Part shown: in pieces, positions 50,519-64,000 of the stretch | Position numbering within the stretch: position 1 is the stretch's first letter | Layout: each line of letters opens with the position of its first letter | Source: Entomortierella parvispora E1425 | Taxonomy: Eukaryota; Fungi; Mortierellomycota | Length of the DNA: 64,000 nucleotides | Assembly (NCBI GenBank): GCA_020891255.1 | Contig: BQFW01000010.1 | Location: 930,001-994,000 of the forward strand | Reading direction: 5' to 3' | Program-made: the position numbers and the translations under genes | The notes under the pieces: generated by a model | What the model was told of the DNA's origin: nothing | Seen by the model: only the letters and a program-made list of their open reading frames with translations | Databases searched by the model: none

Positions 50519-52069
50519 TCACTGTTGCAGAAGCTGCAGATGACCTCGAGGGCTATGAAGAGCAACGCAGATTCCACCGTCCTTAAAGACTTCTCGAATC
50601 TCCATGAGCTCCTCCACGGACACGAATATCATCCCAGAAATCACATCCAGACGTCTCCAATGCTTCACCATCCACAGCGCATCCGACTTTTTCATTTTTT
50701 GACATCCTGGAACAACCAGGATTCGCAACTCATTCAGTCCTTGCAGGCAAGCCAGCCCAGATTCCAAGTTGAAGTCGAGCCACGAGTCCGTCCTGCTTTC
50801 AACAAACGCCTGGACCCTCTTCAAGTTCAGGGTCTCGATCGCAACCAAGTGGGATAGTTGCTTGTAGAGACCATCGCGTTCAAAGGAGTGACTCTCACCG
50901 GCCTCACCGGTGGGGAGACAATCAAGAAGAACAGGTAACACAAGGACTTTGAGCCGCTCACTACAGGGCCACAGTCGTCCTGGGGTCAGGTCTTTAGCGA
51001 GTACCGTTGTACCCTTGAAGCTCTCTAGTAACGGACAAGTCTCCAATAGGGTCACCAGACTAATGCTTGGGGCAGAGATATCTAGCTCTCGAAGGGTCTG
51101 AAAATGGTGCCCAAGCTCAGTGCACTCCGCGAGGTCAATATTATGGCACCATGTTAACTGCTGGATGTTGACCATGGCGCCGATAGCACGGACAAAAAGA
51201 CCATCTTTGCCGGACCTGATGAACCTACATGGCAGGATCAAAGAATGGAGATTTTTCCAGGTGCCAGCTTCCATCACCCTACACAGAGCATCAAGACAAT
51301 CAACATCGCCATCAGTATTTGCGACCAGACATTCGAGAGCCGGAAACCATTGTCCAATGATTGGCCACCATGGCGCGATGCCTCCATCGTAGCTGTCTCT
51401 GAGAATCGTCAGATGCTTCACAGTGGACTTGCACGCATGGCTCTCGGATGAGAGGTTCTTCTGAAATTTCCCAAAGTCTGATACCCTGCTAAGACTCGGG
51501 AGGAGAAAGGTAACCCTGCTCAACGGCGAACAAGATTTCAGAAACGACGCAAAGGTGGCTTCACGGAGCCAGAACGGTGTACCCAATGCTACTACCTCCT
51601 CCAGCGCCTTACAACTCCTCAATACATCCCAAAACTTGCTACTAGCAATCTCTTGGGCAATGTGGATTGATTTCAGGGAGTGTGAGTTGTTGTAAAGGAA
51701 TCTGCCAGAAATCTCTTCGCCCACACCCCAGCCAAGTTTGTCGTTGTGCCCATAGCCATCGCCTGGGCGATAGTCCATAGAATCTACAAATCGGACGGTT
51801 GTCAGTTTGTCCAACCCTTGGACATGAAATAGCTCCACATCAGCAGTGTCATGGACATCCAGATGATGCACAAAGTGCCCGTTCTTCCTGAAAGAGTCCA
51901 CGCTAGGCCCGAAACAGGACAAGGCTATTGTTCTGTACAGCCGCGGCGTGAACGAGGCGTTCCAGTCGCGACACACGAGCGCGCAAGCCGCTAGGCCCAT
52001 TACGTCCAGTTGGGTGGCTATTCTTGAGCGGATCTCATGCAGGTCCAGCGGATGAGTCTTGAACACCAT
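50519..52069 (-). CDS. F-box/LRR-like protein of the expanded Mortierellaceae type
   Basis: HPLDLHEIRSRIATQL...LAACALVCRDWNASFTPRLYRTI (F-box-like); C-terminal WPCSERLKVL, LYKQLSHL and LDFNLESGLACLQGLNELRIL. Confidence 0.8.
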   Translation of the reverse strand: MVFKTHPLDLHEIRSRIATQLDVMGLAACALVCRDWNASFTPRLYRTIALSCFGPSVDSFRKNGHFVHHLDVHDTADVELFHVQGLDKLTTVRFVDSMDYRPGDGYGHNDKLGWGVGEEISGRFLYNNSHSLKSIHIAQEIASSKFWDVLRSCKALEEVVALGTPFWLREATFASFLKSCSPLSRVTFLLPSLSRVSDFGKFQKNLSSESHACKSTVKHLTILRDSYDGGIAPWWPIIGQWFPALECLVANTDGDVDCLDALCRVMEAGTWKNLHSLILPCRFIRSGKDGLFVRAIGAMVNIQQLTWCHNIDLAECTELGHHFQTLRELDISAPSISLVTLLETCPLLESFKGTTVLAKDLTPGRLWPCSERLKVLVLPVLLDCLPTGEAGESHSFERDGLYKQLSHLVAIETLNLKRVQAFVESRTDSWLDFNLESGLACLQGLNELRILVVPGCQKMKKSDALWMVKHWRRLDVISGMIFVSVEELMEIREVFKDGGICVALHSPRGHLQLLQQ

Positions 52070-52489: not shown

Positions 52490-53166
52490 ATGCCACACAG
52501 ACAGCAGTGTCCGGTTAAAACCACGGCGAGCTCGCCGCCAAAAACCCGAGGAGAAATGAGACTCATTCGCGAACAGGAACATGAGCTTGCTGCTGCCGCC
52601 ACTGCCCGAAGCAGACGCCGGTTGCGTAGCCAAAAAGAGGATCAGTCCACCTTCTCCACCTTACCTGACTCTCGTCCTAGAAGACGCAAGGCAGAAGATC
52701 CGTTGAACCGTGGCAGCAAACGTCCGTCTCACGCACCCGCACTTGGTCATGAAGGAGCCCTCGCTGATCCTCACATGCAACTGGAAGAGGGACTTGCAAT
52801 TGACACGTCTGCCTTGTCAACCAACGAACAGCTTGATAGTCAAGAGTCAGCCGAAGCAGCTGCCACAGTCGTTGGACCATTGGTATCAGGGACTACAAAT
52901 CATTCACTCCAAGGAGAGCATACAGTGCCGGAAAGTTATGAAGAGCTTTGGGCTGAGGCGCTGGCAAAAGCATCGGCGGGAGCATCGCCAGGAACAACCT
53001 CAGCTTTAGCTAGCCTTGCCGCGGCGGCTGCCGAGGTAGAACGAGCGGGTCAAGCAGCTGGAACAGATGGTCAGCCAGCCTTAAGAACATCGGCCACGAC
53101 CACGGCGACAGAGGCAACAGCAACAGTGGAAACATTGGCAACAGTGGAAACATTGGCAACAGCGGT

Positions 53167-53211
<45 letters not shown>

Positions 53212-56200
53212 AACTACTGCAGCAGCATCACTGGCTCGCCGACGGAGGAACCAAGGTCCAGCTGTTGGGACAGCAAAACGTGGTCGACCATCCAAAGTTA
53301 GACCAGGTAAGTGTGCGAGACTTTCTTTGTTATATATCTTATACCATCGTCATTGACCTCCGTTTGATTCTATAGAGGATCGCTATGTGAACATCATGTC
53401 GTTGGCAACTCCGTCTCCAACATCAGCGACGACGGCACAGGCGGCGGCGATGCCAGGACCCACAAGAACTCCGTCACCAATAGCGGCAACAATTTCGCTA
53501 ACAGAAGCAACAGCATTGTACCCACAGCAAACTGTGAACAAGGGAAAAGGGAGACGGTTTGAAGAGGATGATCTTGAAAGAATTGGTACGTTTGATGATA
53601 GCACGGCGATTTATATTCTTTTGGGTCAAGTGCTCACCCCCCCCCCCCTCCATTTCTCCTTTCTCTAGAGGAGGAATTGTACGATAGTGACTCTGACGAT
53701 GAAGATGAGCTAGATCCGGTGGAAGGTGAAGATACTATGGGAGTCAGGGCTCAAGGGGACAAGATTCATGAGGTTATATCTGTCAGCAACAGTGAAAGTA
53801 TGTGCAGTGTTGATGCATCAACACGTATAATGGTATATTGGAAACAAATGACTAATAATATTTATCTTTACAGCTCTTTCGTTTGCAAACCTAATGCTTG
53901 AGCTGGTTGCCACCCCAGTTTCTGGATCCAGTATATCAGGTGCAAATGCTGTTGATGATGAACTCAAAGCCTTTGCACAGGAATACAGTTCACAGCAGCG
54001 AGAACAAGATGCTTACATCGAGACCATGGTGAAGAGCCCCCCGAAAGCAGCGAGTACTCAACGCTCATACAAAGCATGGTTGGCAAAGTGGAAAGTAAGT
54101 CAATACGCCTGTGGTTACTAAGTTAGAAGCGTGAATGGAGGACCAAGACTAATTGTTATTTATCTTCAAGATATATTGCTTGAAAAACTACAGCGACGCG
54201 GACTTACCCTTTGAGGTTGAAGAAAATAAGGCCCATGTTTTCTTCAAGGACGTAGTGTTCAATCGGACAACAACCAAAACATTTCACGACATGTCCTGCA
54301 AGACAAAAAAGATACTGGTTGACCGCCTGAAAGATCCTTCCCAACAGCCCCACTTCCGCCAACCCCCGTCGGACCAACACTGGCGTAATAGGCAGAGAGC
54401 AGCTGGAGAAGACCAGACTATAGACAGCCAATCTCCGCAGCGTGTTATTGACATGGACAGACGTAAGATCGATGATGCCTGATCGGAATCTCAAGATTTT
54501 CCTGCCAATCTCACCTCTGCGTTTTATTTCTCTATTTCTCTTGTGCTCTTTTAGTTTTGGCTGATGTCGCGGAGGATAAGGATGGGAAAAAGAAGATTGT
54601 ATGTCCTCTCGCGTATCAAACGGTAGTGATGGCTCGAAAAGCGGTCACTTACTTACATCTCCGGCAGAAAGGGCGACAGGAGGCAGGATCATTGAGGAGA
54701 AATCCCTTTCCTCTCATCACAGGAAGTACGGTGATAAAGACTCTGTTTGAAACCTACAAGCAGAGCCTTGTTTACGGCCAATTTGGTACGGGACGCGACC
54801 CAACTGCAAATTGCATACTACGCAACTCTTACGACCGAAATCAACACCTCCGCATGCTAGCAGATACATGGCAATCAATTGACAATCCAGCGTTACTACT
54901 GGCAATGCGAGAGCACTTTGCTATTGCCGCTCGGCATGCTATGTTGCTTCGGGATGAAGACCTCCGCAACTTGAACCAATCCGACTGTTTTTTTCAAGAA
55001 CTCACGGATGCGCAGCACCTTGGTATCCAGAAGATCAACGCATTGGTTTTCTGCCTCCACAAAGGGAAAACGAACCAGAGCGGAGACGCCCAGTATGCGG
55101 TTGCTATACGGCATGCTGATGTTCGTCGGTGCGCAGTTGGAGCTATGGCCTTTTATCTTCTTGAAAGATGGACAGTAAGTTCTTTTTCATTGTATATGTG
55201 AAGATGTACAAGCCTGCAAGCGTGTGCTAATCTTTAAATTTCTAGGTGTTTGGGGACGATACTAGTGTACCTGGCTCAGCGCCTGTGTTTAATGATGCAT
55301 GGTTGGAGCACAAGGTGTTGCATGGCGCAGGAAAGGAGTCGCATGAACCGATTTCTTATTCAGCGACACGCGACTCCACTTTCAAAGTTTTAAAGCGACA
55401 GTGCATCCGATGTGCTCACATCACTCATTCAGGGCGCCACAGCGGTGCACTGGAAGGGCAAAGATTGGGGATTCTTCTGGAAGATATCCGTAATGGGGGT
55501 CGCTGGACACAAGGCGCGCAGAAAGTACAAGAGTTTTACTTGAATGGCTTTCCATCTCCGTTTGCATTGGGCATCGCAGGATTTCAAAAGGGCGCTTTTC
55601 ACTTGGCGAGAAACGAGGAATGGCCATCACTAGATCTCCAGCGACAAATCTTTCCATTCGTCGAGACCGCTCTGTATAGCAACGACTCTGACAAGCGTCA
55701 GCAGTGGATCGAAGAGTGCAACAGGGTCATGATGGACCGGGATCCAACCAAGATCAAGGCAACGAACGACTATGTAAGACCTTATAATAACAGCCAGCAG
55801 TCAAGAGGAGGAAAGGACAATGGATTCATGTCGACTCCTCAGCACCACTTCTTACTCATGCTGGTTCGGATGAGGAGCATTATCTTGCAAGATGCAGCGG
55901 CTTATATTGCGGCCTTCAACGATGCCAAAGGCAAAGGGAAGGTATCCCCAGAGGCTGACTACAGAAGTGAGAATCCGGCCTTGGATCGAGACATCTTCAA
56001 GTCTGAGGCGTTTATTGCTTTCCAGAGCCGCGTAGAAGCAGCAATTGTGAGGCTGGAGGTTCCTGTGCCCCAGATGTTAGCTCCTGGAATGATTGAATAC
56101 TTCCAGAACATGAACAATTCGATGGCCTCTCTGGGAAAGAGTGTGCAAGATTTGCAGGAACAACTATTGCGCCAACAACCGCAGGATGTAACAGCTTTTT

Positions 56201-57087
56201 TGACAAAATGGACAGAGTGGAATCAAGGATGGACCTCCAGGGAACTGGCTCGCGTAATGCAGTCTTTTAATCCACAGGTACAACAATCTATGGCCCCTCC
56301 GCAATCACACCCACAGGCAGTCTGGCAACAACAACCGCAATCTCAGCAACCATACCCACAGCAGCCACAACTGTACCCACAACAGCCACAGCATTTATAC
56401 CCTCAACAGCCACAGCCACAACAACCATACCCACAGCAACAACAACAACAACAACAACAACAGCAACAACCATACATACAACAACAGCCATACATACAAC
56501 AGCAGCAGCAACCTGGTCAACAGCTTCAACAAGTTCAACACCAACCATCATTTTTCTACGGGCTGCCAGCACTGAAAGGAACCTCCCCTCAGGTGCCACG
56601 ACCTGGATTGCCGCCAGTTTGACAATCAACGGCGGGACCAGAGAAGTCTTTTGCCGAGTTTCTTCAAAGCCAGGTCCAGGTCCAAGTACAAATACAGCCA
56701 CAGCCCACGCGAGCACTTTCAAGACGCACTGCAGACAGACCCCAGTTTGCTCTACTCACAGAAAAACAACATGGGAACCATTGCCTATCAATTGAGCAGA
56801 TCATTGATGAACACCATCGGTTTAAAGAATTCAAAGCGAGGTACCCGCACAACCGCCAGGACGGCAAAGTCATGAAAACTCTCAACAACAGGGCGCGTAT
56901 AATAAAGGAGGTGGACTTTATCATGAATGGAGAGCCAAGAAAGACGCAAGCAGAGGCGATAGAAGAGCTCTCCAATGTTCTAGTTCCAAATACCTCGGGC
57001 GAGATGGAGCATTGGACATCAATCAATCGACTTTTTAAATATTGCCAGGCAAAGAAAAAGGAGAGAGGCACAATGATAACTTCGTAG
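52490..57087 (+). CDS. Crypton-type tyrosine recombinase (Ndc10 domain II-like) with AT-hook and Gcr1_C-like C-terminus; one in-frame TGA
   Basis: Seven phase-consistent exons: 52490-53306, 53376-53585, 53669-53797, 53874-54094, 54171-54462, 54555-55174, 55246-57087. Motifs: KRGRP AT-hook; QRSYKAWLAKWK|IYC; LLRDEDLR; KGKTNQSG; RHADVRRCAVGAMAFYL; THSGRHSG; GGRW; EFYL. TGA at 56620-56622 precedes the in-frame C-terminal domain. Confidence 0.85.
53171..53210 (+). repeat. (GCAACG)n hexamer repeat encoding a Thr-Ala tract in the recombinase exon 1
   Basis: About 6-7 tandem units. Confidence 0.9.
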
Positions 57088-58619: not shown

Positions 58620-59029
58620 TCCTTTCTTCGAGGCCAAGAGAATCACTTTCTTGATTCTTTGAGTTGCTCCTATTTGTTGTCAATCGCTTTCTTAATTGTC
58701 ATGCACCGCGCCCTGCTCATGTGGACTACATGTACCGCAAAATAACTCGTTTGGGGAAGAAAGTGTCTATCTGACCAGGGCGCAATCGATTATCACTCCT
58801 GGCCTGCTGGTCTGAGAGCCAGTTTCTTGTCTGATGCTTTTATTTGTCGTTCTGCTGTGTTCCAGCTCTCACAATAAAGTCAAGGGGGTAAAGTTCAGGG
58901 GCAAATCGAATCGCAATACCATCCGCTCCGCCAGCCACAGTGAGGTGAAGTTCACAAAAAAAGAGAAACCTCTCTTCAACCAACTTATCTCTTTGTCCGT
59001 AGCCAGACGAGATAAAAATAACTATAACT
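58620..59029 (-). ncRNA. Candidate Fanzor omegaRNA region
   Basis: Non-coding DNA immediately 3' of the Fanzor stop codon with stems TTATCTC/GAGATAA (58985-59015) and GACCAG/CTGGTC plus CCAGG/CCTGG (58773-58812). Position is the main argument. Confidence 0.25.
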
Positions 59030-62000
59030 TCAAATTATAGAGGTTGGAGGGAAGAAGGTGGGGGGTCGCGCGAGCTGGCGCGGTCGGTCTTGCTGCTGGA
59101 CATACCGCTCTCCGATTATCGCAATGTTGTGCGCTCCCACGCAGTCTCTGTGGATCCATCGACCACACTGCGTGCATGCACACGTCCTCATAGAGGGTTT
59201 TGCAAGGCGTGTCGCGACGTTCTTTCCTATGCACGTGGGACACATTGTCGATGAGAGGTATTCATCGCCAATGACGGCCTTGTATCCCATTGTTTGTATC
59301 TATCATAAGCGAGGGAAAAGTTATAATCAATCTGCATGCCCACAAGAGAGAGAGCGCGGACACTACCAAGATCGTGTGTGTTTTTACCTTTCCGAAAAGA
59401 CGCCTCAGGAAAGTGGTGTGCACGGACGTCAGGTTGATGCCTGTTTTAAATTTGCCATTCCCGAGCACAAATATAACCCTCCTTGCTTCAACAGGAACTC
59501 CCTCGCATGCCAATTCCACCAACTTTAAAACACCGTTGACCGCAAGGTCCATTTCTGCGAGTTTGGATTTCTTGTGGTCGTGAGTCGCTTTCTTCCAGGT
59601 TGCTGATGAATAAAACCCGTGTATCAAAGGTTCAAGTTGGAAGTACTGCCGGTGTCTGTTTTCAATGGCTGTAATGTCGTGGTAGTTGAGCGGATGTAGG
59701 GCGTTTTGCAGGTCGTGCAGCGACGGCAACAAAGTTGGGTTGTCTTGGTCCTGACCCTGCTGAGTACAAGCCCACAAGGAAGGGCCTACGCTGTCGTTTG
59801 ATCCTGCTGTTGGTTGGGCCCGTTTGCAATGCTCCGCCCATTCTCGGAATGCAAGCGTCGGCTGATAAAGCGATGACCTTTTCACCGTCAGGTTGACAAC
59901 CCTTTCTCCCGGCAAGCTCACACAAAAGGCGCCACTGACCACCTCTCCTGGATCTATTCCGATAACAACAACTGATTCAAGATCTTGACCGAATTCAGCA
60001 ACCAAACTGTCCTTGTCGGGATACAAGGTCTCGATCCTCCTCATGAACTCTTTGTATCTTGTCGATTTCCGTGGCTTGAAAAGATCATACCCAAGGATTT
60101 GCAGCTCATGCCCATCTGTTCGGATTATGTTGTTCAGGGCATATCGGTATTGTCCGGAAACCTGGGGCGGCATGGGAAGTCGAGGTGGTTCAGGATCCAT
60201 TGTCGATGGTGCCGAGGAGGAGGGCAATGGTTGCTGGGCTGTGAGGGAGTTGTTGTGCAGTCTCCGGTAGTGATTAATACGTCTCTTGTTGTATTGCTCT
60301 AGCACCAGTTGGCCGTATACGTCCGGCAAGGTGTTGCTCCGCTCGTCCATTGAGGTTATTTTCTTCCCGTACGATGTCTGTCTTTTCTTGGCTGCCTTGA
60401 CGGTGGACCGGTCTCCGACAAACAACTGTTTAATGACATTTCCGTAGGAGTTTTTCCGGAGATGATTGGCACGTTGCCGATTGCAGACGGAGGTCATCAA
60501 GATGTCGCCCACTCGTCCGGCTGTTACGCCCCATAGTAATGCCACCAGAGCCTCTTCATTCAGGTCAATGAAAGAGTCTGTCATCCCTGCCTGGACACAA
60601 AACTTTGGCTGTTTTACGGCTGTCGGTATCTGCAGCAAATGACGCCAGCAAAGTCTCAAGTGACCCTTCTTAAACGTCATCTTTTGCGATGCTTTCCTTG
60701 GGTCGTCGTCTGAGTCTTCGTCATCTGCAGACAGTTCGGCTTCGTTGATGGCGTTGTTGATGGCAGCATCTGATGTCTTCTCGTCATCCACTACCCCCAT
60801 AAGCTCGGTGCAGTCTAAAGATAACTTTGTCAACTGCAGCACGCAAAGGTATTCTTCGATTAGAATCAATTTTTTTAGAATGCAGTGATCCAATTTCAAA
60901 AACCACTTCGTTCAGTACCTTGTTGCAGAGAGTGGTCGGCAATTTGCGATAGTGCTGCTTGATTGCTAGACAGATTTTTGGTGTCAGTTCGGCAATGACA
61001 TTGCTCAGGGGGAGGTTGGACGGGTTTAATGCCTCGAACTCCGGGTGGAACGCCTTGAATTCGTCAAAGGTACTTTGTGCTTCCACCACGGCATCCTTGG
61101 ATTGGTCCTTAACAGGACGGCGTCCACCTTTCATGTCAGAGGAGCCTCGCAAGACAAACGATAAAAGATTCTGCACGAATCTTTCTAGCCAGTCTGACTT
61201 TGAGTCCAGGACATTTTCCAGAAACTCGTCCCCAGTGCTGTCGATCAAGTGCCGCAAAATCCTCATCTCCATCATCTTCAATACGTAATGCTTGGCACTG
61301 TTGGTGACGGAGACAGCTTCATCCAGACGCTGGACTACCAGCGTGCTCTCTTCTTTGGAGAGATCTGTGGCACGCAGGAGACATCCTCGCAGAGAACCCA
61401 TGGTCAGAGTAACGGTTGCAAAAGCAGATTTGAAGGATTTTTTAAGAGCCTTGGGACCCGCTGTCGGTGATGTGGGAATAGGAAGCTCCTTCTTGCGTGT
61501 CTTTTTCACTGGGGAAATTGGTGGCCGATCGGACTTTGTAGTTGGTTTACGCGGTTTTGGTTTTTTGGGCGTCGAAGGCGTCAAGTGTGCAAGCTCAACA
61601 TCGTCTATGGGACTTGCAGTCTCCAGCGCAACTGTTTGGGGAAGATATCGATCGTTCAGGTCGGTCCGGGATCGAAATCTAAAGAGGTACATGAACGATA
61701 TGTGAGAACGTTGGAGTTGATGCAACTTTGTCTTTTAGTTCCCAAAAGGATACGAACCTTGATTTCTCCCACTTCTTTCTTCTTTCCTGCTTCCTCTTGG
61801 CCTTCTTCCTTTGTCGCTTCTGCTCCCTTTTCTGTGCACGGCTCGGGTCAGGGACAGGCTGGACGGAGGTCGAAGAGTCTGCCGCATCTGTGGAGGGTGC
61901 TATGTGGTCCGATTCGGCTATTGGTGCTGGTGGTGCCAATGGCGGCTCCGTATGTGGTGGTTTTGCAGGGCCTAGGGCAAAACGGTCCCAACTGCGCTTC

Positions 62001-63476
62001 GCTTTCTTGAGTTCCACTTTGTTGACTATAGACAAAAGTCGCCGGTGAATGTCCAGCGTTGGACTGTTTCCATCTGCATTTAGAGCTGTCTCCTCACAAT
62101 GAACAAATGCCTTCACTGCATTGTCATAGCTGTTGGCTAACACGCTCAGCTGCTTGTTGGCAGTGGCTATTCGTCGAAGATCCTTCTGGTGGGCCTTTAC
62201 TGAGGAAGGGTCGGCGATCCTCCTCAGACGTTTCTCGCAACTCGCGATGGCTGCAGCCTTTGACTCCTCCGCAGTCTGATGTATGGCACGGACATACTCT
62301 TTGATTTGCTGGTAAATCCATTTTGCCTGGTCATCTTTGCTGGCAACGTTAGAGCTCCCCGTCACAAGCTGTCTAACCTTGGCCATGTTCGATGCCAGCT
62401 GGTAGAGTGGCATGCCTGCGGTATAGTCATTGGTCGTCAAGACAGAAACGAGTACGAGATGCGCCGGAGTTTGGAGCTCGAGTTCGTCCAAAAGTGTCTG
62501 CTTACCGAAAGTGGTCCAAGTCAAGGGCCGACCAACGGGCATTGTGATTGTGGTCACCGACTCGTATGCCATAAAGTCTGAATCTTTGGTAATGATCCTG
62601 ACATTATCTGGTGAATGGGCATTCGTCACGCGGTTTGCAATGCATGTGTCACTCTGGTGGGTACACTGGCATATTTTCCATCCGCTTTCATGAAGTTGTG
62701 TGATGATATCCCTGATTGCGCTCGCGGGAACTCGGTACGAAGCCTTCACCCTCTTGTATAGTTGGGTAGTATTCCTGATCCTGCCCCCGTCATAGTCTTT
62801 CTCTAGCTTGCCGACTCGCGTCTCCAAGGTTTGGTCGCGCTTTCTGTGAGCAAGTTCCTTCTCCAGGGACCGGGAACCGTCGAAATGAAGTGTTGTATGA
62901 TCCTTGCTCAAGTAGGACACAAGGATTCGATCGATTGTCTTCCCCAAGGATCGATAATCCTAAGAAGCAGCGCGATTGAGACGGTAAGTATTCTAATCGA
63001 AAAGGCATGACTCTTGTTGTAATGATCAGACTCTCTCTAAATGTAGAGTAGATATACAGATATACGTACAACGCTCCTTTCCTCAGCATCGTTTGCTTCC
63101 AGTGAACCGTCTTGATTGAAACGAATTTGGGATGGTCGTTCTGCCAGCATATCCTGCATCGCTGCTACAATGCCATAAGGGTGCTTTGGCTTGAAGGATC
63201 CACCCGGGCGCGTTTTCGATGCAGACTGGCCTCATCTGTTCCTGGTCGCTTCGGAATGGTTGTTGACGGTGGTGTAGACGCGCTCGTTGGGACATCGGGC
63301 GAAGCTACCTGTCGCCGAGCATTTTTGGCTGCGAACGCCACATCCAGGTGGAAACCATGACTGTGAATTATTCCGAAAAACATGGAGGCGCAGTCCACAT
63401 GACAGGTGAATCCTCGAAGGTCCTCCTCAACTCCATCGGTCGATTTGATCCTAGCTGCAAGGCCCTGGATTCCCAT
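59030..63476 (-). pseudogene. PIN (XPG/FEN1-like) nuclease fused to Fanzor/TnpB RuvC + zinc finger, 5 exons, about 1370 aa when repaired
   Basis: Exons 63476-63070, 62992-61758, 61678-60919, 60833-59388, 59299-59030. PIN motifs: MGIQGL...HVD, HFDG, QSDTCIA, TKDSDFMAY, TNDY. RuvC: VIGIDPGE, VIFVLGNGKF, GDEYLSSTMCPTC, CTQC, HRDCVGAHNIA. One 1-nt deletion near 63195 and one TAG at 62960-62962. Confidence 0.85.
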
Positions 63477-64000
63477 GGTAATCTATGGCATTGTTGTGTT
63501 TAGAAGAAAGTTAGTGTCATTACTTTTTGCTTGTCTAGCTCTGGCGGGGTCCAGATGGTAGCGAAATGCAACGAAAAGCATACAGGCTTTGTCCACGAAA
63601 GGGTGAATGACGGTGCAGTAAACAAGGAGAATGAAGACTAATGGTGTGTGTGTGTGTGTGTGTGTGTGAATGTGGGTTGGAGGAGCTGGAGCTGTTGATG
63701 ATTTGAAAGGAGGATCCAAAGAATGGAAAGTGAAGGCGGACGAATGACCAAAGTGCTGCTTTTCCCATAGTCTATCCTCTTTTTATCAGTTCCTTGCGCG
63801 TGGTTCAACTGATGGAACCCAGCGGCCCGTCCTCTGAAAACACAACCCATAACACATCCAGCTCAGTAGGAAACACACTTGTCGCTATCTCCTTTCATGC
63901 TCTACGATCACATGGTCGGGAGAAGACAAAGAGACGATATCTTTTCACGATGGTTTATTCTAAAACTCGAGACGCGTATGGCACTCCTCAAAACAGTTTC

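Follow-up and report, generated by a model that had tools for sequence, protein, structure and literature searches.

The minus-strand, multi-exon gene at positions 59030-63476 of the 64,000-nucleotide (nt) stretch analysed here, hereafter called the window (contig BQFW01000010.1, positions 930,001-994,000, of Entomortierella parvispora E1425; assembly GCA_020891255.1), almost certainly is one copy of a multi-copy, transposon-like family of the Mortierellomycota that encodes a protein of about 1,360 amino acids (aa), in which a 5' nuclease is joined through a basic linker to a Fanzor1-type nuclease, and which in this copy is complete apart from a one-base deletion. Fanzors are, to our knowledge, the only known RNA-guided DNA nucleases of eukaryotes, and what they do in eukaryotic genomes has not been settled. 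We propose that the fusion couples RNA-guided cutting to the processing of 5' ends, and we give this explanation as a whole, identity and mechanism taken together, an even chance of being correct. The initial annotation of the locus, made from the DNA letters, knew of no described PIN-Fanzor fusion, and the literature that we searched, an incomplete set of about 8.4 million papers and preprints, likewise contained no report of a natural Fanzor-XPG fusion or of a Fanzor from Mortierella. Papers that mention Fanzor together with PIN or exonuclease dealt only with engineered fusions or with unrelated matters, and a keyword search in Fanzor surveys and reviews found no mention of such an added nuclease domain. 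A natural exonuclease-Fanzor fusion was found in none of the papers searched.

The reality of the fusion is best seen in other members of the family. Exon 4, used as HMMER query against 1.84 billion representatives, retrieved 173 relatives, 12 of which are 750-1860 aa long. The initial annotation had raised the case that homologues never carry both domains and had proposed a search for intact ones; nine of the 12 long relatives proved to be collinear with the N-terminal, middle and C-terminal pieces of the window. Named collinear members come from E. parvispora, Mortierella alpina and further Mortierella spp., Linnemannia gamsii, L. hyalina and L. elongata, Modicella reniformis, Gryganskiella cystojenkinii and Benniella, and at least eight genera of the Mortierellomycota have collinear homologues; in public databases the proteins are called "hypothetical" or "PIN domain-like protein." Fusions in a single open reading frame (ORF) also exist in two metagenome contigs, where they do not depend on how exons are joined. 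In the first (L001) the whole fusion lies in an uninterrupted ORF of 1256 aa with a sub-threshold match to XPG_I and a significant match to the TNB domain. The second (L002) has one exon of 1173 aa, which begins with MGVQG..., includes the XPG part and reaches the canonical RuvC-II position. A 77-nt intron comes next, in the place of the last intron in the window, and the exon behind it contains DEFRTS...CCQC...RDRD. A further contig (L005) repeats the three-ORF layout of the window with gaps of 60-80 nt, the junction sequences of the window agree with the homologues residue by residue, and both halves retain their catalytic motifs at about 25-35% identity. A seemingly single-exon fusion in E. 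parvispora was rejected, because the long tblastn match contains introns that stay in frame and a nonsense codon. A homologue search based on indexed words recovered very few members of this family (1, 4 and 2 matches). Among the nearest fold clusters in the AlphaFold database were A0A507CQ46, a 448-aa XPG-I protein, for the N-terminal half and A0A507C583, an 855-aa TNB-domain protein, for the C-terminal half; the two accessions have the prefix A0A507C in common, and both proteins may be from the chytrid Synchytrium. If the 855-aa protein proved XPG-like in its first 450 residues, the fusion would reach beyond the Mortierellomycota.

In the window the gene is represented by five minus-strand ORF pieces (63165-63476, 61679-62947, 60784-61725, 59262-60899 and 59030-59290), which are collinear with single proteins of other genomes. 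Splice sites were chosen from frame-consistent GT...AG candidates by residue-by-residue agreement with homologues (Table 1). The five phase-consistent exons of the initial annotation are borne out as five collinear pieces, but the frame of exon 1 is broken at a run of C residues, and the predicted length of about 1370 aa has to be corrected: with the exon structure of the relatives the coding sequence is 4085 nt, one short of 1362 codons, and yields 1361 aa only once the missing base is supplied.

The break is due to one C fewer than in the relatives in the run at 63179-63182, which shifts the frame into a TAG stop at 63165-63167. Related contig L006, with 76% DNA identity over 2.3 kb, has one more C, and its exon 1 is a continuous frame up to a GTATGT donor. 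The extra base is also present in related contigs of runs X4 and X6 from the same organism, seen on the plus strand as a G inserted behind 63178. Apart from this frameshift the reading frame of the window copy is open, and a second homopolymer difference, at 59060, alters just the last few C-terminal residues. Since the difference is one of homopolymer length, it may be either a recent inactivating lesion caused by slippage or an assembly error. We also considered extra introns that would bypass the frameshift (63308-63154, 63226-63165 and 63226-63162, with products of 1309-1340 aa), but these were rejected as less likely, because their donors are poor (GTAGCT, GTCTGC) and the relatives have no intron there. 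Small insertions and deletions between copies cluster in intron 1. The 5' flank is about 78% identical to that of L006 out to the end of the L006 contig, which aligns at window position 63705, and the conserved unit therefore reaches at least 230 nt upstream of the ATG. This flank includes a (CA)n microsatellite at 63650-63680.

The last ~750 residues are predicted to be a Fanzor1-type TnpB homologue, an assignment that holds in both profile and fold comparisons. The catalytic RuvC codons lie exactly where the initial annotation had placed them (59952, 59261 and 59144), and the Gly at the canonical RuvC-II position, the relocated Glu and the CPTC...CTQC zinc finger that it had described were found at their positions as well. 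The exon 5 piece (59030-59290) matches the Pfam family Cas12f1-like_TNB (PF07282) with an E-value of 1.4e-7 and 32 bits, above the gathering score of 26.3. All three residues of the Asp...Glu...Asp triad are conserved in the family alignments and align with TnpB and Fanzor structures. When a family profile of this half was compared to the PDB, it matched TranC, the mimivirus TnpB-like protein L79 (Fanzor2), TnpB, Cas12f, GtFz1 and SpuFz1, with E-values down to 2e-9. The Glu of the family motif DEYL(TS) aligns with E467 of the mimivirus Fanzor2 (L79, PDB 9B0L), and the relocated-glutamate reading is supported by this pairing because an E467A mutant of that protein is catalytically dead (PMC10530073). 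In the window copy Gly/Asn occupies the canonical position (VLGNG), and the Glu stands just ahead of the zinc ribbon. The fold was tested on a homologue (P0012) that is 32-47% identical to the window protein. Its model, with a predicted local distance difference test (pLDDT) score of 81, had SpuFz1 as top Foldseek match in the PDB (5e-8), followed by GtFz1 and PpFz1, all three ahead of most Cas12f and TnpB entries. The predicted RuvC/Fanzor fold of the C-terminal half is thus upheld.

The first ~330 residues are likewise predicted to form a structure-specific 5' nuclease of the EXO1/FEN1/XPG type, and this assignment also holds at the level of profiles and modelled folds. A family profile of the region gave EXO1 as its best match in the PDB (4e-8), followed by FEN1, Rad2 and XPG, and all 29 PDB matches with E-values up to 1 were FEN-family enzymes. 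The fold was tested on residues 1-330 of homologue P0005, to which the window pieces are 33-44% identical. The AlphaFold model (pLDDT 85, predicted template modelling score 0.83) had human EXO1 as its top Foldseek match (327 columns, TM score 0.66, E 5e-10), with FEN1, Rad2/XPG and GEN1 behind it. The counterparts of the EXO1 active-site residues in the family are listed in Table 1; in the window copy the K of SLEK aligns with the gateway residue K85 and the second R of HRKR with R92. Six of the seven FEN-site carboxylates are present, namely the D in HVD, in HFDG and in QSD, both D of DSD and the D of NDY. The FEN1/XPG half of the initial annotation is therefore supported by the EXO1 match, the fold and the presence of all five of its motifs, with the qualification that one of the seven canonical acidic residues is a Gln. 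This Gln, at the position of EXO1 E150, is common to the close relatives from Mortierella and Linnemannia (most of those aligned there, as QSD or QAD), and Glu is kept as E-x-D in deeper members of the family (P0111, P0139, P0134 and P0154). Glu is the residue in Benniella, one M. alpina copy and the two metagenome members. Because the other catalytic residues are conserved alongside the Gln, the pattern argues for a site that works, perhaps in modified form, in the Gln-bearing members.

None of the Pfam XPG families matched the window pieces at E-values up to 1, and in homologues P0111 and P0139 the matches to XPG_I were sub-threshold (16.8 and 17.9 bits, as compared to a gathering score of 24.9). 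Single-sequence phmmer searches of the PDB with the window pieces and with residues 1-340 of P0139 returned no matches; the family profiles alone succeeded. As judged from its sequence, the N-terminal half is a divergent FEN/XPG branch outside the curated Pfam models.

The two halves are separated by about 230 residues that are helical and highly basic. In exon 2 the nuclease core is followed by a helical extension and then by a Pro-rich and strongly basic linker, which continues into exon 3. The basic linker noted in the initial annotation is present, with the runs KREQKRQRKKAKRKQERRKK, PKKPKPRKP and KKTRKK, and these runs look like nuclear localisation signals. Such signals have been described for other Fanzors. 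Exon 3 also contains a conserved helical block of about 180 aa, for which the family profile found no match in the PDB, and the look-alikes of the exon 3 middle region in the language-model comparison were generic helical repeats. From its position we guess that this block may correspond to the WED/REC region at the N-terminus of the Fanzor.

Table 1. Exons, introns, predicted active-site motifs and neighbouring features of the fusion gene in the window, with EXO1 equivalents taken from the profile-PDB alignment.
Feature	Position	Strand	Details
Exon 1	63070..63476	-	MGIQGL start; first catalytic Asp; variable low-complexity insert; frameshift
First catalytic Asp (HVD)	63393-63395	-	
Intron 1	62960..63069	-	110 nt, GTACGT...TTCTTAG, phase 0
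Exon 2	61758..62959	-	XPG/EXO1-like core: HFDG, gateway Lys and Arg, QSD, DSD, NDY
HFDG	62879-62881	-	family HxDG = EXO1 D78
Gateway Lys, Arg		-	family Lys, Arg after HxDG = EXO1 K85, R92
QSD	62648-62656	-	family (Q/E)xD = EXO1 E150, D152
DSD	62576-62584	-	family DSD = EXO1 D171, D173
NDY	62426-62428	-	family NDY = EXO1 D225
Intron 2	61679..61757	-	79 nt, GTTCGT...CTTTAG, phase 2; same position in E. parvispora copy L010
Exon 3	60919..61678	-	basic linker (PKKPKPRKP, KKTRKK) and conserved helical region
Intron 3	60834..60918	-	85 nt, GTACTG...CTGCAG, phase 0; same position in E. parvispora copy L010
Exon 4	59388..60833	-	Fanzor body
RuvC-I Asp (GIDPGE)	59952-59954	-	
Gly at canonical RuvC-II position (VLGNGK)	59460-59462	-	
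Intron 4	59300..59387	-	88 nt, GTAAAA...GATAG, phase 0; same position in distant metagenome homologue L002
Exon 5	59030..59299	-	relocated Glu, zinc ribbon, RuvC-III Asp; stop TGA 59030-59032
Relocated Glu (GDEYLSS)	59261-59263	-	
Zinc ribbon, CPTC	59231-59242	-	
Zinc ribbon, CTQC	59165-59176	-	
RuvC-III Asp (HRD)	59144-59146	-	
Short 3' motif across stop codon, and hairpin	58978..59050	-	CTCTATAATTTGAAGTTATAGT; conserved in L003 and L004
Degenerate second zinc-ribbon segment	57491..57613	-	67% identity over 30 aa; 1.4 kb downstream, same orientation
Crypton-type tyrosine recombinase gene, multi-exon	52490-57087	+	NDC10_II at 54557-55201, E 1.8e-7

We hypothesize, in keeping with an idea of the initial annotation, that the two nuclease halves could act in sequence on the same target. 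The Fanzor half, guided by an omega RNA encoded in the element, would cut for example an element-free allele or the excised donor site, and the fused EXO1-like half would enter at the nick or break and degrade the 5' strand, or remove the 5' overhang or flap of a staggered RuvC cut. This would leave a 3' single-stranded tail and so direct repair into homologous recombination, with the copy that bears the element as partner. RNA-guided homing or restoration could thereby be efficient in a eukaryotic nucleus, even though end joining there would otherwise close the site again or mutate it. We put forward this path, from RNA-guided cut through built-in 5' processing to recombination and homing or restoration, as a tentative proposal whose chances fall somewhat short of even. 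As background, OMEGA nucleases act in homing, and the preference of eukaryotes for end joining makes homing less effective (PMC13565253); exonucleases, including T5 exonuclease, have been fused by engineers to RNA-guided nucleases (PMC12923547). The stronger version, that the family is a natural "cut-and-resect" homing machine, which channels every programmed break to homologous recombination and whose design is kept across the Mortierellomycota, seems to us rather unlikely. If true, such a design would solve the obstacle that end joining poses to RNA-guided homing in eukaryotes.

Several observations weigh against these proposals. Because of the frameshift, the window copy possibly makes no full-length protein, and the Gln that replaces EXO1 E150 (62654-62656) could weaken or abolish catalysis. 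The locus was contained in no RNA run of the organism, and the contigs from runs X4, X6 and X9 look like DNA because they retain the introns. We did not find an omega RNA: the 270 nt around and after the stop codon fold no better than shuffled sequences (z score -1.2), Rfam had no match in the 3' region, and in distant copies the DNA is conserved no farther than about 60 nt beyond the stop. Neither terminal inverted repeats nor target-site duplications or element ends were found within the window, which stops 524 nt upstream of the ATG. Finally, exonuclease fusions lowered the activity of MmeFz2 in the engineering study (PMC12923547). Two short pieces with less than 90% identity were seen in a soil metatranscriptome (X1) and are no proof of transcription.

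The most basic objection, that the two halves are separate adjacent genes or that the fusion is an artefact of manual splicing, is hardly credible. It is true that no RNA run of the organism contained the locus, that the window copy has a broken frame in exon 1 and that many database models are just 450-520 aa long. However, the uninterrupted ORF of L001 and the single exon of L002 span both domains, the models are collinear across genera with junctions that match residue by residue, and the short models that were checked are cut by contig ends. These "standalone" homologues of about 500 aa (P0012 and P0097) start 66-80 nt from the ends of their contigs and are taken to be truncations for this reason. 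A more serious alternative, although an improbable one, is that the XPG-like domain has lost some or all of its catalytic power and serves as a structure-specific DNA-binding module, comparable to Mkt1 in the XPG family, which would not resect DNA but steer the Fanzor to nicks, flaps or forks or anchor it there. The Gln at the first XPG-I glutamate, in the window copy and in most close relatives aligned, would be expected under this explanation, as would the lack of a Pfam XPG match at any threshold for the window pieces. Yet conservation of the remaining six acidic residues, and of the Lys and Arg of the gateway, extends throughout the family, including its Gln-bearing members, whereas a dead site is expected to drift more, and E-x-D is kept in the four deeper members named above.

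The nuclease could also be active but serve another purpose. RNases occur among the PIN-like and FEN-like nucleases, and RNA flaps are substrates of FEN1, so that the domain might act on RNA, either in the maturation of the omega RNA, a role that the initial annotation had suggested, or in the clearance of R-loop RNA. We consider this quite improbable, as the closest matches in sequence and fold are all DNA 5' nucleases (EXO1, FEN1, Rad2/XPG and GEN1), TnpB-type enzymes use RuvC to process their guide RNA themselves, and no omega RNA was found at the locus. Similarly slim are the chances that the XPG-like nuclease serves the transposition of a carrier such as Mutator, Crypton or another element, by acting on flap, hairpin or gap intermediates uncoupled from the RNA-guided cut. 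A Crypton-type recombinase gene with an NDC10_II domain does lie tail-to-tail beside the locus, and Fanzor1 is known inside several transposon superfamilies (PMC3627910). But the neighbours are inconsistent across genomes while the covalent fusion stays conserved, and terminal inverted repeats were not found in the window. Set beside these alternatives, the preferred explanation remains that of a 5' nuclease that would process the ends of the RNA-guided break.

The family is probably mobile. Other samples of the same organism contain many short contigs of 90-99% identity with very high word depth, and runs X4 and X6 include internally deleted relatives, in which 1484 nt within 61350-62835, covering most of the XPG core and the linker, are replaced by 112 other letters. 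Decayed copies were also seen: L006 has two deletions of 2 nt, the E. parvispora copy L010 has a Trp-to-stop change, and a zinc-ribbon relic of 120 nt lies 1.4 kb downstream of the gene in the window. A comparison of nonsynonymous and synonymous substitution rates (dN/dS) with L006, the nearest relative at the DNA level, was abandoned, as L006 is decayed and its exon and intron identities are alike. In runs X4 and X6 we also observed a contig joint at 59034-59156 that skips 121 nt including the RuvC-III motif; its shorter side is 30 nt, and it may represent a deleted subfamily or a mapping artefact.

The gene lies in a transposon-rich stretch. The zinc-ribbon relic downstream of the gene is in DNA nearer to the L004 copy (74%) than to the main copy, which suggests that members of the family inserted repeatedly at this site. 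Both the relic and the fusion gene are arranged tail-to-tail with the Crypton-type gene, which may be a carrier, a neighbour or a target. In other genomes the neighbours differ: L. hyalina has a piggyBac-like fragment, E. parvispora and L003 have no annotated neighbour of this kind, and no consistent transposase partner was found at L003, L009 and L010. Across the stop codon of the fusion gene, the motif CTCTATA(A/G)..GAA..TATAGT is kept in the DNA of L003 (9140-9212) and L004 (1655-1745) despite differing reading frames. Behind it, both the window and L003 have a hairpin with the loop CUACGGA in common and with different stem sequences; three sequences are too few for covariation. The window segment 58978-59050 folds with a z score of -2.8, and the motif and hairpin may be the end of the element or a piece of the (omega) RNA.

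Further observations concern the flanks and the environment. An ORF of 516 aa on the minus strand (50519-52069) has a borderline F-box-like match (23.7 bits, as compared to a threshold of 24.3) and is probably an ordinary host gene that flanks the transposon-rich stretch. At the other end, an open frame that starts with MLYDHMVGRRQRDD at 63899-64000 on the plus strand runs off the window, head-to-head with the fusion gene and about 420 nt upstream of its ATG. The mine-drainage metagenome runs X5, X8 and X10 contain 7-9% of the sampled words of the locus, and relatives of the element or of the organism therefore occur in mine drainage.

A conserved fusion of this kind would be direct evidence that the processing of ends after the cut matters to the element, and would thereby support the homing model. 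It would also make it possible to test how a selfish nuclease sways the choice of repair pathway in the nucleus, and would provide a natural template for the nuclease-exonuclease fusions that are now built by trial and error. More generally, surveys of Fanzors that search for the TnpB core alone can overlook large accessory domains.

Among known systems, Fanzor1 provides the best structural matches to the C-terminal half of the fusion (SpuFz1, PDB 8GKH/9CEU; GtFz1, 9CER; PpFz1, 9CF0). The two have in common the split RuvC with a Glu beside the zinc ribbon, the Cas12f1-like TNB zinc ribbon, a eukaryotic host, spliceosomal introns, a basic region that resembles nuclear localisation signals and multi-copy, transposon-like behaviour. 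The fusion differs by the extra N-terminal nuclease of ~330 aa and the linker of ~230 aa, which together roughly double its length. The solved Fanzors were absent from the sequence matches of the N-terminal domain at E-values up to 1 and from its top 50 fold matches, and thus appear to be without a detectable XPG-like domain. With EXO1, FEN1, XPG (Rad2) and GEN1 the fusion shares a fold match over the full length of the EXO1 catalytic domain, the MG(I/V)xGL start, both gateway residues (Lys and Arg) and all but one of the seven acidic residues. It departs from them in the Gln at the first XPG-I glutamate in the clade of the window, in a long variable insert between the first helix and the HxDG strand, in scores below the Pfam XPG thresholds, in being fused to a TnpB-type nuclease, and probably in the lack of the C-terminal partner-binding tails that these enzymes have. 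Poxvirus G5 supports recombinational break repair, and Pox_G5 together with the XPG clusters of the Nucleocytoviricota gave the top look-alikes in the language-model comparison (0.92-0.93), a lead at the level of features only. These FEN1-like nucleases of poxviruses and giant viruses are free-standing and lack the RuvC half, unlike the fusion. T5 exonuclease is itself a member of the FEN superfamily. The closest analogues in design are the engineered fusions of T5 exonuclease, TREX1 or TREX2 to Cas or Fanzor nucleases, in which a cutter and an end-processing exonuclease are likewise placed on one chain (PMC12923547). Those fusions are man-made, and the activity of MmeFz2 was lowered in them (PMC12923547), whereas the fusion in the Mortierellomycota is natural.

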